DNA of 49,330 bases, counting the filler, from Bipalium vagum (Eukaryota): the NCBI GenBank assembly GCA_037834085.1. It is 2 parts of 2 records of this genome, joined end to end, with 100 filler letters (N's around TTAATTAATTAA, not from the genome) between each part and the next. Parts side by side here need not be neighbours in the genome. Positions count along the whole stretch, not along the records: positions 20,006 to 49,330 come from JBBMKC010032143.1; 1 more part is not named here. One strand, written 5' to 3'. A program made the position numbers and the translations under genes. Shown here in pieces: positions 20,006 to 34,610 of the stretch. A model generated the notes under the pieces. It had not been told where the DNA came from, searched no databases, and worked only from the letters and a program-made list of their open reading frames with translations. Every line of letters begins with the position of its first letter. Position 1 is the first letter of the stretch.

Positions 20006-21480
20006 AAGAAACAACAGTAATGTTTTTATGGCAGATAAATGGGATGTTGGATGCACGGCCTTGCTGAAACATAAGATCGTGATGAAAGGAACTCCCACCA
20101 ACGTGAGACCATTCTTCATAAAAATAAAATCATAAGAAGGTGCAATTCTCCCTGGAACACACCACTCATTTGTGTGTGGAAAAAACGAAGAAAGATATTC
20201 GGCTCTGTTTAGATTTCAGAAAGCTGAATGCCATCACGGAAAGTCAGGATATTTTGATGCCCAATATAGAAGAAATGCTGGATAAATTTGGGGGAGCACG
20301 GTTTTTTAGTTCCATTGATTTATGGAATGGATACTATCAGGTTGAATTGGAAGAAGAATCAAAGGAGAAGACAGCGTTCTCTACAAAATCAGGCCAATAC
20401 TGTTTTAATAGAATGTCTTTCGGGATTGCAGCAGCACCGGGAAAGTTTCAAGAACTGATGACCAAGGTGCTCAACGGAATGGAAGGTACTTGCATATATC
20501 TGGATGATATACTGGTGTTCACTGACAACATTGAGAATCATTATAAAATTTTGAATCGAGTAATTGAAAGCATTGGGGAACGGGACTTCGTATAAATCCA
20601 GAAAAGTGCCACCTTATGAGAAGTCAAATTAAATTTTTGGGCCACATTATCAGCAATGACGGAGTTAAAACGGACCCTATGAAGATCGAAGAAATTAAAT
20701 CATTCGAAAGGCCAAAATGTGTAAAAAGCCTTCGCAGTTTTTTAGGAATCTGCAACTACTACAGAAGATTCATAGAAGGATATTCGCTGAAAGCAAGGGC
20801 ATTAGAAACAATATGTGGAACAACTGGGAAGTTAATCTGGTCAGATAATTGTGAAAAGGCATTTGTAGAGATGAAAGAAGCACTTACAAGATCAACAATA
20901 TTGTGTTTTCCTGATTTCATCAATAATTCATTTTGGTCACAGATGCCAGTTTTGACATTATTGGAGCCGTGTTAGTACAAAAAGACGGAAACGGAAGGGA
21001 AAGAGTAATAGCATATAGCTTCCATGCTATGAATTCTCACGAAAAGGGATATTACATCACAAGGAAAGAACTACTTGCAATTTATTACTTCTGCAATCAC
21101 TTTAATCACTATTTATATGGAAAAAGATTTACTCTTAGAACAGATCCCAAAGCTATAACATTTATGCTATCAACAAAGAAACCAATTACAGCACAGTACC
21201 ACACATGGATAAACTACTTGAGTAGTTTAGATATAAATTTAGAATATTGAAAAAGCTCAGAACATTCTAATACTGACATGTTATCAAGAAGATTCTGTGA
21301 TAACTGTACACAGTGCCTTATGTCACACGTTGATTCTAAATCTGGAAAGATGAAAACAAGAATTTTAAATATGCTGAGCGAAGATAGAGGAAAACTGTGT
21401 CAAAGGGATAATCTGGAAATTCGTAAAATCAAAGAAAACATTGTTAAGGATAAGAAAGGTGGGCTCAGGCTTTTGGCGGG
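20006..21480 (+). mobile_element. Ty3/Gypsy LTR retrotransposon pol fragment (RT + RNase H), frameshifted
   Basis: RLCLDFRKLN, SIDLWNGYYQV, KTAF, RMSFG, YLDD, FLGH, LRSFLGICNYYRRFI, TDAS..IGAVL, KELLAI, NTDMLSR; three frames, truncated before the integrase. Confidence 0.95.
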
Positions 21481-22489: not shown

Positions 22490-23146
22490 TCTTCTAAATT
22501 AATAAAAAACTAATTGTACTTTTCTTTCATATGTAAATTGTATAAATAATCAAGTTCATCTTTTTCCATAAAACGTACTAACATTTTAGAATATATTTGA
22601 TCTCTATCTGCTTTTGAAATTTTAAATAAAAATTAAAACATTTGTATTATTTCTTATACTTCTTAAAGGTAAATCAAAAAATGATTTAGATAAATATTTT
22701 ACTAAATCAAATTTTTCATATTTTTGTCTAATTTATCTGGAGCTTTAATTTCATTTGCTTTGTCAGATAAAGTTACATTTATGAGACAATGTCTCCAAGA
22801 GGTTTTATATTCAAAAGACTCACTTTGCAGATCTTCAGTCCCTTTCTCATCAAATTAATATTTATTTTCATATTTAAACAATTTTCAAACTTCTTCTTTT
22901 GATAAACCATAAATCAAAACAATCTTTTATATATTTAATTGCTGGTTGAAGAAAAACAGTTTTAGAAAAATTAATTAAATTGTTATAATCAATGTAATCT
23001 TGTTTTAATGACATATTAAATAATAACATTGTTTTTCCACATTCAGAAGGACCAATAATTAACATTCTAAAAATTTTTAGGAAATTAAAATGATTTTTAA
23101 ATCTTACAGAATTATTATTTAAAAAATCAGCACAATAAAACTCCAT
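22490..23146 (-). pseudogene. Polinton packaging ATPase (A32/FtsK-like) remnant
   Basis: FRMLIIGPSECGKT Walker A; C-terminal YLSKSFFDLPLRSIRNNTN. The Walker B/arginine-finger segment appears deleted. Confidence 0.85.
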
Positions 23147-23185
23147 TTTTTATAAATTTTTTTATAAATGTGCCTTTGTCTTAGA

Positions 23186-23430
23186 TCAAACTTGTTTAAG
23201 TTGAACAGTAAAATTTATTTCTTCTCCATTAGAAATTATTAATTCTTTGTTATTATCAAATATCTTAAATTTTATTTCAGAAATATTTCTTGTAATTAAA
23301 GGATGATAAATTGGGAGTTTGGTATTTCAATTATTCTATATCCTCTTGGAACAGAGTTCGAAGGACAATCAAAAATAATATTTGTTCTATAACCATTATA
23401 CAATCTTTTTTAAACAATATTACAATCAAA
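23186..23430 (-). pseudogene. Polinton minor capsid (penton) C-terminal remnant
   Basis: CNIV..LYNGYRTNIIFDCPSNSVPRGYRIIEIP...YHPLITRNISEIKFKIFDNNKELIISNGEEINFTVQLKQV*. Confidence 0.75.
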
Positions 23431-23659
23431 CAATATTACACCTTTTGTAAGGGTCCAACGAAGTTGTCACGAAGTATAAACCATTTCCTTGTTTTACAAT
23501 GTTAATTTTAATTTTACAAAGTTTTTGTAATAATTCTTTTAGTTCTTTTTTATCAGATTTATCTGAATTATCATATTCTAAACTATTTAAAATTGAATCT
23601 TTTTGTCCTTTTCCAAAATAAGGATCGAAGTATAAACCACCATTTTTATCTATAATTCC

Positions 23660-23965
23660 AGGATTTGTAAAATAGATTTCATTTATAATAAATATTTTCT
23701 CTGTCCATTTTGCTGTATACCCTTTTTCAAATTGATTTTTATATTTAAAAAATTCCAACATGATCTCCAATAAGATACTTAGGTTTGAGTTTTGAACTTA
23801 GATCTGAAATATTTTCATCAGTTTTTATTTTTAATTTTTCTAGATTTTTACACGCTTTATTATGAGAAATACCAATTGAACCATGAATTTTATTGGTATA
23901 AATATTTATTAAATTTGGTAATAAGTTTAACCATTTTCTGTTTCCTTGCTCAGTAAATATTTAAC
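23660..23965 (-). pseudogene. Polinton retroviral-like integrase C-terminal remnant
   Basis: FTEQGNRKWLNLLPNLINIYTNKIHGSIG...PKYLIGDHV..FKYKNQFEKGYTAKWTEKIFIINEIYFTNP. Confidence 0.88.
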
Positions 23966-26075: not shown

Positions 26076-28888
26076 TTCCTACTCAAATAATTGAGGAAGT
26101 ATCATAAAGGACAAGTACATCATGGGCAATAGTCCAATGGCACTTGAAATCCATTGGGAATTTTCTGCATTTCAGTTGTTAAAATCTTAGAAAATGGAAT
26201 AAAAATAAGTAAATTAGGTTAAGAATATCGATTTGGGACTTATGGTAACTTAACAGCGTGCCTATTGATTAGAAGGATTTATGGAGTGTAGTTCGAACGG
26301 AACTAATGCAAAAATATGGAAAATCTACTAAATGTAAAATCAAATCAAAACTTAAATAATTGAGAACAAATCGAAAAACTTTTAATACTTTTATTGGAAA
26401 AATATATCAAATTAAAAGTCACAAATTGTTTTAATAAAAACCTCGAAGGGTTAAAAGAATTCTTTCACAGTTACCTTGTAGGCTGTGGAAAGGTCCTAAA
26501 ATAATTTAACAACACTAACCGCTGTGTAAATTGTCAACAAAAAGAGAATGTAGAAGATTTGCAAATAAAAAAGAATAATCCTAGTTGCAAGAGACTAGTG
26601 ATTATTGGGAAACGATTATTTAAATGAATCTTGTATAATTTAAATACAAGTTACCAAGATCTAAAATAGAATAATAATGAATGAGAGTAATTAAAATAAT
26701 AAAAATTATTTAGTAGTAGCATTTTTAGTAGTTTTTATATTAGAATTTTCTGTGGATTTGGACTTGAAATTCTGCAACTGACTATTTTTGTTTTCAATTT
26801 TGTCGTGATTAGTTTTCTCTGTCTGAGTTGGAACATTTGACCATTTTATACAAACCATTGTTTTATTGCCAATAAAGTTTTATTGTTGAACTGATTATTT
26901 TTCTTTTATTTAACACCGATCACTAGTGAGAAAGCTAACGACGTAAAGCTTAGACTTATTATTAGAACAGTAATAACAGGTTTAAAAACACTAAATTTGT
27001 GGGGACTATTCCTAAGCAAGCTCCCAGGCAGGGAAAAAGAAAAGAAATCTTTTTTGTGATCCAAAACTATTTTGTGATTCAACCTTAACATTGTGTATAA
27101 ATTCTTAAGATGTAAAATCAATGAAATTTTTATTTAAATTCTTTTTGCATGTGTATAATACAATATGTAATAATTGAATCCCGAGAAAATAAATAAATTA
27201 TTAAAATATAATGAAAATTCACAAAAAATAATAAATAAAATTACGATAATTCTAAAATTAGAAAAAATGATAAAAATTCTTACTAAAAATAAAGGTTGTT
27301 AACAAAATTAATTAAATGGTGAAGAAAAGAATTATAAAAAAATAAATATAGTATAATAAAGATTTTATAAATAAAAATAGATTAAACATTATAATATAAA
27401 TATAAAATATTTTTAAAATTCAGACACACGTTGAACAAGAATTTAAGTTAAGAATTTTTATTAATTATTTCAAAGAGCAGAAACTTGATAGCCGTGCACC
27501 AGCATCAATTATTAAAGGATTAAATAACTCAAGAAATTTTCAACAAATAGTATTTCAAGCGACACATTGGTCTCAGATTACAACGTCAAAGAAAAAAGAA
27601 AGTGAAAAATTTAATTGACAGCTGGTTTCAAATTTCAACGTCAAAAGGAGTATAAAAGAAACAAACGAACCGGACTAAAGGAGAAGAATCTAATGAAATA
27701 ACAAGAATGCAAACACGTAATTCAAAGTGAGAACCAAAGACCATTACTCTCAACGTTGTCACAAACGAATAACTTCACGATTTCGTCAAGAATTCCTCAT
27801 AAAACCGCACTACAGTTCAGAAGTAAAATCTCAATCCATTTCAAGATCAGCAGTATCAAATTATTCTCGCAGGTTTAAAGGAGTAATTTTTATTTATTAA
27901 TAATCAATTAATTACCGAAATAACAATTTGATTCAAAATTGAATATTTCGCAAACTAATTTGATTATAATTTAGCATTTAATTAATTTAAATAATTTTGT
28001 CAGAATAATTGGATAGATCCCCAATTATTCTGTATCATCAAATAAAAGAAATTTTTTTTGTTCTTCTCATAACTTATTTTTTTTGCTTTCTCAACGCCAA
28101 GTAGGGCGGAGAGGCGCTTTTTACTTTCGAGTGCTCTTGAGGCTAGGACAGCGAAGAGCATAACTAAACTACTTTACTTTAATACTTGTCCGGGATTTAT
28201 CAATAAAATAATTTATTTGTTCAACAAAGTTTTTGATATTCAAATATAATTTATAAAGTTTAATAATATTTTCTAATTTGTCTTTGTGAACGATTTTTAT
28301 TACTTAAGTGTTGGAAATCAGTTTTATTTGAAAGTTTTTTTTTGCATCAATATTCACTACCCAGTCGATTAAAAATTACTACATAAACGCAACCTCTTTT
28401 ATATTGAACACGAGCGTAACACACTCAAAACCCTTCTGATTCTTATAAATTTAAATGAGCCACGTTACGTTTTGACTAAATAATATTATCTATATCCATA
28501 ACCCCCAAAAACTTAACAAATTCTTTCTCTCCATTTTGAAAACTGTTTTGGTATTTCATAAATACAAAGTTAAATTATTGAACTTTTAAATTTTTCATTG
28601 TGTAATTTAAATAAATTCGATTGAATTATTTGAGAATAATTAAATTAACTTCCTTTCTAAAATAAAGAATAAAAAGAATTCAATTATTTCAATTGTATAA
28701 CAAAAAATATGGTTTCCAGTTATACATAATTATCTCTTCTAATAATAATCTGAATGTCTAAATATTATTTGTCAGAAAAATAGTTAAAATTGACCAATAG
28801 TATTTATTTAATCTTTTATTAATAAGTGATTGGTTTTGAAAATTAATAATTTCTTTTTTAAATCAAGGAAATTTAATTTAGTAAAAAC

Positions 28889-29164
28889 ATGAAAATGATT
28901 ACTTTATTATTTTTAATATTAACTTGTATTAGTCAAATGAATGTAAGCGGTTTGGCATTTCAGGCATTTCCTTTTTCGTTTGATCAATGTAAAATGAACC
29001 TTAAAGATTGCTTAAATTTATATTTGCATTATCTTAATGTTGAAGAATCAAATATTTTAAGGAAACGTAATTTGGGAGATTTATCCATAAACGGCGATTT
29101 TGCTCTGATTAGACAAATGTTGGACAATCGTAGGAAAGAAGAAAATCTTCTGAAACATGGATGA
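28889..29164 (+). CDS. Neuropeptide precursor, CRF/DH44/egg-laying-hormone-like (91 aa)
   Basis: AAAC-ATG start; hydrophobic signal peptide (MKMITLLFLILTCISQMNVSG); RKR convertase site; peptide NLGDLSINGDFALIRQMLDNRRKEENLLKH followed by terminal G (amidation); AATAAA at about 29277. Confidence 0.85.
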   Translation: MKMITLLFLILTCISQMNVSGLAFQAFPFSFDQCKMNLKDCLNLYLHYLNVEESNILRKRNLGDLSINGDFALIRQMLDNRRKEENLLKHG

Positions 29165-29909
29165 TCTAGATTTGATATACACAAATTAATTTTTAATATA
29201 TGTTGGCTGTGTTATTATGAATTATATTATTGGGGGTTGCCGATTTCAGGTTTTACCTAAAAAGCATTTGTCAAGTAATAAATGAATTAACAAGATCTGA
29301 AAACGTTAAAAAGATCTTTATAATAATGAAATCTTTATTTTATGAGTATTTCTGCGTTTAATTTTACAGATTTTATTTGTAAGTATTACATTTCATTTAT
29401 TGGAATAGGTATAAAACTCGTTCTGCTCGGAAAGTACTTGTGTAACATTTCATTTTTTTTCAATCATTAAATGCTTCAGTTACATTATTGAATATTCACT
29501 AATTATAAAATTGAGGTATTTAATATTATCATTTATCCAAAGGTTCTTGATATTATAGTAAAAAAATGTTTTAATTTTTTACAGTGTAATTTAAACAAAT
29601 GAGAGTGAATGTTTTAAGAGAAATATATTTTAAAAATAAAAATTAAATTAAAATTAAAAATTAATTTGTTTTAATTCATAAGGATAAGAAAAACAGGATA
29701 ATAAAAATAATTTGACAAAGATAAGACTAGTTTTGGAAAATAAAATTATAAATCAGTTCTTATAAGTAACCGATCAATATATTTTACCACCGAATTTATT
29801 CATTTATGTTTATTTATGTAGATGAATGATTCCTTAATTATTTTATAAAATCAATGACAAGAAAGGGTTCTATCTTATTATGAAAAGTAAAGAACATGTT
29901 ATTAATATA

Positions 29910-33567: not shown

Positions 33568-34610
33568 ATGGTGTCCCATAAAAAATGACCGTTTCTGAAA
33601 TATCAACATTAAAGCTAAATAAAGTTTTTTTAAAAAGAATTAATTAACTATTGATTTTTTGCATAAAATTTTACGTAGATTGCTTGATAAAATATTAAGA
33701 TTAAATATTTGCTTTATTATTCATTTTAGCGCTCAATTAAAATGTCTACAAAATTTGAAATTCGTGTAATTCTTCTACATTATTAGAAAAGACAGCTGTC
33801 AGCTGCTGAATCCACCAGATTAATAGTAGAAGTTGAAGGCCCAGATGCGCTCAATGAGAGGACAGCAAGGCGCTGGTTTTCAAAATTCAATTCCGGTGAC
33901 ACCAGTCTCCAAATTGCAATAGGTTCTGGAAGACCTTTGGTCTTCAAAGACGATGATCTACTGGATTCTATAGAATCAGATCCTTTTCAATCGACTCGAG
34001 AATTATCATCTCAAATAGGTCATTCAAAATCCACAATTCATCGTCACCTTTGTTCTCTTGGCAAAAAATACAGAGTGCCTCGAATGGACCCACATCAGCT
34101 GACAGATGTGCAAGTTGATAAACGATTTGAAATTTGTAAAAGGTTGTCGGATAACCCATTTAGCCAAAGAATTGTCGCTATGGATGAAAATGGATCCTCA
34201 TTAATAATCCACACAAAAAATGGCAATGGTTATCAGCAAACGAGTCACCTGATGGCAGGCCTAAAGTAGATAGATTTGGAATTATGAGGAAATTGAACTC
34301 TTACCACATCCTCCGTACTCCCCTGATGTTGCAGCATCAGATTTCTATTTGTTCCGCTCCAAGGCACATTCTTGCACTTTTCATCCACTTTGAGAATATG
34401 GATGACTTGGAAAAGTGCCTATCGGTATTTTTTGACTCTAATTCTCCAGGATAGTATGAAAATGGAATTCTCAAAATTGCAGAACGTTGGGCTCTTGAGT
34501 GTGAAAACGATGGATTTTATTTTATTTCATAATTTTATAATGTACAATAAAAATTTTTTGTTGTATTTATTGAATTAAAACGGACCATATTTTTATAAAT
34601 ATGCTGTTTA
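33568..34610 (+). mobile_element. Internally deleted mariner
   Basis: MSTKFEIRVILLHY, RTARRWFSKFNSGD, SGRP, DPHQLT, IVAMDE, then jumps to LPHPPYSPDVAASDFYLFRS. Confidence 0.9.

Follow-up and report, generated by a model that had tools for sequence, protein, structure and literature searches.

A candidate CRF/DH44/ELH-type prohormone with a short, predicted amidated peptide in the flatworm Bipalium vagum

The window analysed here is a stretch of DNA of 49,330 nucleotides from the flatworm Bipalium vagum (NCBI GenBank assembly GCA_037834085.1), in which two parts of two records are joined end to end by 100 filler letters. The part that runs from position 20,006 to 49,330 (JBBMKC010032143.1; hereafter, the piece) carries on its plus strand, at 28889-29164, an open reading frame (ORF) that is quite probably a genuine compact flatworm prepro-hormone gene of the CRF/DH44/ELH family, encoding one 30-residue amidated peptide. 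Four direct observations carry this reading: (i) the ORF itself; (ii) the anatomy of its translated product; (iii) a statistical match to the motif of the family; and (iv) exons elsewhere in the genome that resemble those of CRF receptors. CRF/DH44/ELH signalling is an ancestral bilaterian peptide system which governs stress, diuresis and egg laying. All genome-wide searches described below refer to an assembly (G000) of 441 Mb in 272,664 contigs.

The complete coding sequence is contained in a single exon on the plus strand and consists of 91 codons, the first of them ATG, and a stop codon, exactly where a previous inspection of the letters without database searches (hereafter, the sequence-only reading) had placed it. 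An A is present at -3 of the ATG, and an in-frame stop precedes it by just four codons. At both the DNA and the protein level, the genome contains one copy of the ORF, whose G+C content is 28.3% (24.9% in the piece), with GC1 > GC2 > GC3. Translation also confirms the order of elements that had been read along the ORF, that is, a signal-like N-terminus, an RKR site, a 30-residue peptide and a Gly before the stop. The following parts can be distinguished, all of them on the plus strand: (i) a predicted signal peptide, MKMITLLFLILTCISQMNVSG (amino acids 1-21; 28889-28951); (ii) a propeptide with two cysteines, C34 and C41 (amino acids 22-57; 28952-29059); (iii) the tribasic prohormone-convertase site RKR (amino acids 58-60; 29060-29068); (iv) the predicted mature, amidated peptide of 30 residues, NLGDLSINGDFALIRQMLDNRRKEENLLKH (amino acids 61-90; 29069-29158), with a computed monoisotopic mass of 3520.868 Da in its amidated form; and (v) an amidation-donor Gly (29159-29161) followed by the stop (29162-29164), the end of the peptide reading ..NLLKH-G-stop.

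Within the mature peptide, the stretch LSINGDFALIRQML (amino acids 65-78; 29081-29122) corresponds to the N-terminal motif of the family and would be the receptor-activating end of the molecule. Further on, an internal RRK (amino acids 81-83; 29129-29137), a feature absent from the description given in the sequence-only reading, would be either left uncut or used as a second cleavage site. The signal peptide was judged by the -3/-1 rule of thumb alone, which is an established rule for signal-peptide cleavage: the precursor starts with MK, a 10-residue hydrophobic core (ITLLFLILTCI) and SQMNVSG, with V at -3 and G at -1, and cleavage after S15 would be an alternative. AlphaFold placed a helix over signal residues 5-18 and, when run on the single sequence, one helix over precursor residues 67-90 (predicted local distance difference test, pLDDT, of ~71-72), in a model of low confidence as a whole (mean pLDDT 57.7). 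The helical hydrophobic moment of the peptide does not differ from that of its shuffles. Downstream, 113 nucleotides past the stop, a hexamer AATAAA (29277-29282, plus strand) is a weak candidate for a poly(A) signal, and it constitutes no evidence alone because this hexamer occurs about four times per kb and strand in the piece.

The match to the family was quantified with a log-odds profile of 14 columns, derived from 18 non-redundant published CRF/DH44/ELH peptides of molluscs, nemerteans and arthropods from which the candidate was left out, using BLOSUM62 pseudocounts and the six-frame residue frequencies of the genome as background. The references include (i) Aplysia ELH, Lymnaea CDCH, the ELH peptides of Pinctada, Crassostrea and Lottia, and four nemertean peptides (Thiel et al., 2021, supplements, PMC8557429); and (ii) the diuretic hormones of Apis, Bombyx (DH34, DH41 and DH45) and Tribolium, together with the DH44-like precursor of Tetranychus (PMC8557429, supplements). 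All of them start with [LIF]-S-[ILV], 0-4 residues past a basic site, and present, in the same register, hydrophobic residues at positions 7, 10 and 14 (PMC8557429, supplements). In the candidate, RKR precedes LSINGDFALIRQML by four residues, which is within the usual spacing of the family, and LSINGDFALIRQML itself scores 24.7 bits (P = 1.9e-9 per 14-mer, from the exact null distribution). Sequences sampled from the columns of the family score between 23.5 and 36.4 bits (5th-95th percentile); since the candidate falls at the 9th percentile of these samples, it can be regarded as a divergent but in-range member. Furthermore, none of 400,000 composition-preserving shuffles of the 30-mer reached 24.7 bits (the maximum was 22.7) and, in consequence, it is the order of the residues, not their composition, that matches the family.

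At the other end of the peptide, ..NLLKH-G-stop is comparable with the RLLEK-GKR, KLLSI-GKR, RLLRL-GKR and ILKEV-G-stop of the references. Length, on the other hand, falls outside their range, with 30 residues versus 32-45 in the references counted or named by length. The sequence-only reading had called the peptide unusually short, which is correct, but the difference is a modest one.

Among the known members of the family, the DH44/ELH peptides of two spiralian groups, nemerteans and bivalves (Thiel et al., 2021, PMC8557429; Stewart et al., 2014, PMC4200219), have the same layout as the candidate: a basic site followed, after 2-4 residues, by [DE]LS[IV] or LS[ILV]N, then a heptad of hydrophobic residues, a basic pair inside the peptide and, at the end, ..LLxx-Gly. 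The Nipponemertes peptide presents an exact GDLSI identity with the candidate, and its pairwise similarity to it is not significant. The SLNGD..ML of Pinctada ELH1 corresponds to SINGD..ML in the candidate, whose LSIN is also found in Lottia and Bombyx. Basic residues are likewise retained within the annotated peptides of Lottia (KRR), Crassostrea (RKR) and Nipponemertes (RR). Three differences can be pointed out: (i) the candidate has 30 residues, whereas spiralian DH44/ELH peptides have 32-42, the shortest reference being a 32-residue copy in one nemertean precursor which is nearly as short, only two amino acids above the candidate; (ii) the candidate precursor contains one copy of the peptide, whereas those of bivalves and one nemertean precursor contain two; and (iii) the candidate ends in Gly-then-stop, versus Gly-then-KR in the spiralian peptides.

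With regard to gastropods, 7 of 14 residues of LSINGDFALIRQML are identical, in the same register, to those of Aplysia ELH (ISINQDLKAITDML). Both peptides end in LLxx (RLLEK in Aplysia, NLLKH in the candidate) with an amidation signal, the amidation of the candidate being predicted, and an LLxx before the amidation Gly is common to the candidate, Aplysia, Lottia and the nemerteans. But gastropod ELH peptides (Aplysia ELH, Lymnaea CDCH; PF02323) are 36 residues long, versus 30 in the candidate, and derive from a multi-peptide precursor of ~270 amino acids which also contains the bag-cell peptides, whereas the candidate precursor is compact and has a single peptide.

Arthropod DH44 shares L/I-RQ-x-L with the candidate (e.g., Bombyx DH45, LSINNPMEVLRQRL), the RQ of the latter occupying motif positions 11-12 as in insect DH44. 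In addition, Apis DH44 (..LELARRKAL..) keeps an RRK inside the annotated peptide, as the candidate does, and the DH44-like precursor of Tetranychus terminates in ..ILKEV-G-stop, a Gly-stop end like that of the candidate. By contrast, the insect DH44 references comprise 34-45 residues (Bombyx DH34 has 34) and end in ..FLxx[IV]-amide, one residue longer than the candidate after the LL-equivalent, and motif position 6 is D in the candidate versus P or S in arthropod DH44. Compared with these insect and gastropod references of 34-45 residues, the residues that the candidate lacks are those that separate the N-terminal block from the LLxx of the C-terminus. Finally, vertebrate CRF ligands (CRF and urocortins) are helical and amidated, as is predicted for the candidate, which is ~10 residues shorter; the ESM Atlas clusters nearest to its mature part consist of CRF-family peptides of 40-41 amino acids.

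When the whole precursor was submitted to the ESM Atlas, the top two results were the arthropod clusters DH44 and "Diuretic 41" (score 0.89; PF00473 in 78-88% of their members), and all the other rows listed corresponded to neuropeptide precursors (neuromedin S, NPF, NPFF). With residues 55-91, the top two results were CRF-family clusters (scores of 0.88 and 0.87, with 177/256 and 179/256 shared features; PF00473 in 99-100% of their members), and NPY-, glucagon- and PTH-type clusters came next, not far behind; these figures are uncalibrated for parts of proteins. Hence, the assignment to the CRF/DH44/ELH family proposed in the sequence-only reading is supported by the profile, the spacing of the cleavage site, the LLxx-Gly-stop end and the placement in the ESM Atlas.

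A class-B receptor system, which had been deduced from the peptide, is indeed present in the genome, where Pfam scans matched 7tm_2 30 times and the HRM domain 16 times. Schmidtea mediterranea has 20 secretin-class G-protein-coupled receptors (GPCRs), and parasitic flatworms have 1-5 (PMC6114109); the 16 HRM matches, like the extreme AT-richness of the genome, are consistent with a free-living flatworm. Two exons, both of which pass the thresholds of Pfam itself, resemble CRF receptors: (i) an exon encoding the HRM domain, i.e., the extracellular domain (ECD), on the minus strand of one contig (G000:C211217:86-388; L014), whose six best solved-structure matches are CRFR2/CRFR1 (E = 4e-9, versus 5.5e-7 for PTH1R); and (ii) an exon encoding transmembrane helices 1-2 (TM1-2), which includes ..RSLRCLRNEIHCNLIISFILR.., on the plus strand of another contig (G000:C261643:19103-19255; also L048:9058-9270), whose five best solved-structure matches are CRF1R (E = 3.5e-10), followed by GLP2R, PAC1R and PTH1R. 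The best-hit ranking of these separate exons, with modest margins over PTH1R, PAC1R and GLP2R, points to the presence of a CRF/DH44-type class-B1 receptor.

Other receptor exons were observed in the same scans. At least six separate class-B1 TM1-TM3 exons (contigs C46353, C131279, C131936, C83483, C242328 and C99009; L005, L006, L008, L009, L011 and L045) carry C[DEH]R[VI].[LI]HKNLF. In three of them this takes the form C[DH]R[VI]TLHKNLF, which we take to be the signature of calcitonin/DH31 receptors, and the exons as a whole look like an expanded calcitonin/DH31-receptor-like group. Two HRM exons (L015 and L016) contain CPDY[LY]NGF. Several intronless frames of ~576-838 amino acids, with a complete 7tm_2 and no HRM match on the same contig (C229483, C214409, C213267, C159839 and C216577; L004, L010, L012, L046 and L003), may be adhesion-like orphan receptors. 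On contig C261643, a transposase ORF (L048:6659-7204, minus strand), akin to a Tc3/mariner fragment of the window described below, lies ~2 kb upstream of the CRF-receptor-like exon.

The production of the peptide would comprise three steps: (i) co-translational entry into the endoplasmic reticulum and removal of the signal peptide (amino acids 1-21); (ii) cleavage by a prohormone convertase after RKR (amino acids 58-60); and (iii) conversion of the terminal Gly into an amide, giving NLGDLSINGDFALIRQMLDNRRKEENLLKH-NH2. Ligands of class-B1 GPCRs bind in two domains, as has been established for CRF receptors from solved complexes. By analogy with CRF receptors, the amidated C-terminal helix (..NLLKH-NH2) would dock on the extracellular HRM domain of the receptor, and the N-terminal LSINGD end would engage and activate the transmembrane core, the receptor then signalling via Gs and raising cyclic AMP. 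The central helix would be shorter than in other members of the family, but 30 residues, which is the length of glucagon, GLP-1 and VIP, may still reach both domains of the receptor, as those three hormones do. We infer that the gene is expressed, that its product is processed, amidated and paired with a receptor of this type, and that, as is the case in insects and molluscs, its physiological role concerns osmoregulation or reproduction.

Several results weigh against this reading. Pfam models PF00473 (CRF) and PF02323 (ELH) matched neither the precursor nor its mature part nor any part of the genome. However, a published nemertean DH44/ELH peptide used as control also gave no Pfam match, at E values up to 10, and these negatives are, in consequence, not discriminating for spiralian members. 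No homologue was retrieved from a word index, no paralogue from the genome itself, no alignment with Aplysia ELH by BLASTP and no orthologue from the JGI metagenomes, where a single spurious bacterial match appeared; phmmer against 1.84 billion representatives returned P0001 as sole match, which is an artefact. In Smith-Waterman comparisons the candidate obtains z values of 2.8-3.1 with Aplysia ELH and of 0.9-1.7 with the Nipponemertes peptide, versus 4.2-4.5 between these two accepted members. Both ESM Atlas scores are below 0.9, the value under which they are to be taken as leads only, and family-consistency is low (5/10 with the whole precursor, 2/10 with residues 55-91). As for the profile, its columns were aligned and counted by hand; none of the 18 references has F at motif position 7 or L at position 9; and the null model, which takes residues as independent and identically distributed, is anti-conservative, a repeat having yielded a chance match of 20.8 bits. 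The codon-usage log-likelihood, trained on six verified ORFs of the genome, is -0.035 bit per codon for the candidate versus a mean of -0.021 for random open frames, and a search of sequencing runs found the locus in one DNA run and in no RNA run.

Regarding the two database matches mentioned above, P0001 was rejected as a homologue, being a 13-fold tandem-repeat protein whose score is a sum of weak matches to the propeptide, and the JGI match was discarded as a chance word (LAFQAFPF) on a GC-rich bacterial contig. Apart from the tandem-repeat artefact P0001, the propeptide (amino acids 22-57) presents no resemblance to database entries. A sequence search of solved structures with the peptide, solved CRF-family peptides included, gave no match; neither the ORF nor the neighbouring gene was on record when looked up by exact sequence; and the contigs obtained from the sole DNA run with the locus consist of repeat pieces only. 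Since Pfam, phmmer and BLASTP see nothing, the assignment to the family rests on motif-level and language-model evidence.

These results leave room for an unlikely alternative, namely, that the ORF encodes a real secreted peptide precursor which is not a CRF/DH44/ELH homologue but a lineage-specific flatworm peptide, or the ligand of another receptor class, with a convergent N-terminus. Most prohormones of flatworms are small and lineage-specific (Collins, 2010, PMC2953531; review PMC13551398). In the candidate, hidden Markov model and BLAST tools see no homology, pairwise z-scores are marginal, the peptide is shorter than any reference counted and atypical at positions 7 and 9, and NPY-, glucagon- and PTH-type clusters come close behind in the ESM Atlas. 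Nevertheless, the published nemertean member is equally invisible to Pfam, and the profile score of the candidate is inside the range of the family itself. Agreement with the family extends to both receptor-contacting ends, to the internal RRK and to the amidation signal; CRF-receptor-like exons exist in the genome, and the whole-genome Pfam scans contained no other CRF-family ligand candidate.

Less likely again is a chance ORF in AT-rich non-coding DNA, neither transcribed nor translated, that mimics a prohormone. When the piece is modelled as a second-order Markov chain, ATG ORFs that reach 91 amino acids or more are expected 0.6 times per 29 kb and, for this reason, the length of the ORF proves nothing by itself. 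I/L/F-rich six-frame translations easily yield hydrophobic starts and K/R pairs, the candidate was chosen by eye among many windows, and neither RNA runs nor homologues were found in the searches made. Random frames do as well as the candidate in codon usage, although this measure is uninformative here, because even the verified p190RhoGAP-like ORF of the piece goes unrecognised with a value of -0.003. A scan for bacterial promoters and terminators, irrelevant in this context, gave fewer matches than expected. The motif alone would be equalled by ~1.7 14-mers genome-wide, but in the candidate it is accompanied by four other features: (i) a dibasic site 0-4 residues upstream; (ii) a Gly-stop or Gly-basic 10-30 residues downstream; (iii) [LF][LFY] at -4/-3; and (iv) an upstream ATG ORF with a hydrophobic start. 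With all of them, the genome-wide chance expectation falls to ~1e-7 to 1e-5 (a rough product of separate probabilities), which is improbable even allowing 100-fold for the imperfect null. An ordered match of P ~2e-9 per position, unequalled by any of the shuffles and correctly placed, with the tribasic site before it and the Gly-stop after it, argues against chance, as does the fact that an unrelated method, the ESM Atlas, indicates the same family.

Least likely is a CRF/DH44/ELH-type gene that either stands as a silent relic locus or yields other products by cleavage at RRK, a consensus convertase site, namely NLGDLSINGDFALIRQMLDN (2218.105 Da) and EENLLKH-NH2, an amidated heptapeptide of 880.477 Da. 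In its favour, the peptide is unusually short as it stands and no RNA run was found with the locus, but accepted members keep their internal basic pairs (Apis RRK, Lottia KRR, Crassostrea RKR, Nipponemertes RR) and the ORF is intact, with its start, signal, sites and amidation signal all preserved.

The candidate prepro-hormone gene had also been located in a desert of transposable elements, which is only roughly right: the ORF is single copy, but a repeat ends nearby and the piece contains retrotransposon and Tc3/mariner fragments. The end of this abundant ~120-bp repeat is at 28400-28520, ~370 bp upstream of the ORF, and at least 40 scored copies, from 115 candidates, were found on other contigs with 76-93% identity. 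A decayed retrotransposon pol gene occupies 20140-21250 on the plus strand as three consecutive ORFs in different frames, the first of them with a reverse-transcriptase domain (E = 4e-21), and a fragment of a Tc3/mariner-type transposase with helix-turn-helix domains is found at 33937-34269 (plus strand). On the minus strand, at 22874-23770, there are two ORFs of 90 and 114 amino acids with no Pfam match; the first one has a P-loop, GPSECGKT, and presumably recalls the packaging ATPases of large DNA transposons.

Downstream of the candidate, an intronless ORF of 354 amino acids (42715-43779, plus strand) codes for the GTPase-like domain at the N-terminus of a p190RhoGAP-type protein, as judged from a Ras-family match. 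Its relatives carry PF16512 (RhoGAP-FF1); the closest ones are unnamed metagenome and Logan proteins with 58-65% identity, and the best named ones are from Artemia (40%) and Limulus (37%). A run of 142 N's (an assembly gap or a mask) follows at 44425-44566, and a further ORF, at 48053-48670, is possibly a later exon.

The assembly contains three intact COX1 types, on contigs C253947 (L027), C246471 (L028) and C253320 (L029), with 74-80% mutual identity. In L027, AAA is found where spider COX1 has Asn (5/5), TGA where it has Trp, and ATA where it has Ile, Val or Leu, never Met; in L028, ATA reads as Ile and AGA as Ser. Together, these codon readings fit the echinoderm/flatworm mitochondrial code. 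In L029, which is 75% identical to spider COX1, ATA reads as Met, and this type is from another animal in the sample (prey, host or contaminant). Stop-ridden nuclear mitochondrial copies, 88-92% identical to L028, are present on contigs C38971, C246095, C234430, C127110 and C232500; since L028 is the type from which these degraded copies descend, the L028 animal is the owner of the dominant nuclear genome. With the AT-richness and the HRM count, this indicates a free-living flatworm, probably a planarian. The best named relatives of p190 and COX1 are arthropods, but an arthropod origin was rejected because a search for arthropod cuticle-protein domains gave none, which is a weak negative.

With regard to novelty, the ELH/DH44 motif has been surveyed in molluscs and in nine further lophotrochozoan phyla (PMC6425005); annelids, nemerteans, molluscs and arthropods were reported to have it, and flatworms were not. 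Among spiralians, surveys report the ligand from molluscs, annelids and nemerteans only (PMC6425005). The words of the peptide are absent from the planarian prohormone catalogue (Collins, 2010, PMC2953531, supplements), and no CRF/DH44-type peptide is listed among those found in polyclads (review PMC13551398). Most likely, then, the candidate is a new member of a known family, with no flatworm report found in the open-access literature, and the shortest of the members compared. On balance, the evidence leans towards a wider claim, that is, that it is the first CRF/DH44/ELH-type ligand described from Platyhelminthes, that no natural member of the family is shorter, and that it is paired with a retained CRF/DH44-type receptor.

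If this were true, the system would have been overlooked in flatworms, not lost, and the family would tolerate the loss of about a third of the central helix as long as both receptor-contacting ends are kept, a natural 30-residue member showing how much of that helix is dispensable. A flatworm member would close a phylogenetic gap and provide a candidate ligand for the orphan class-B receptors of flatworms. It would also offer a system tractable by RNA interference in which to ask if the hormone has control over reproduction or over the water balance maintained by the protonephridia.

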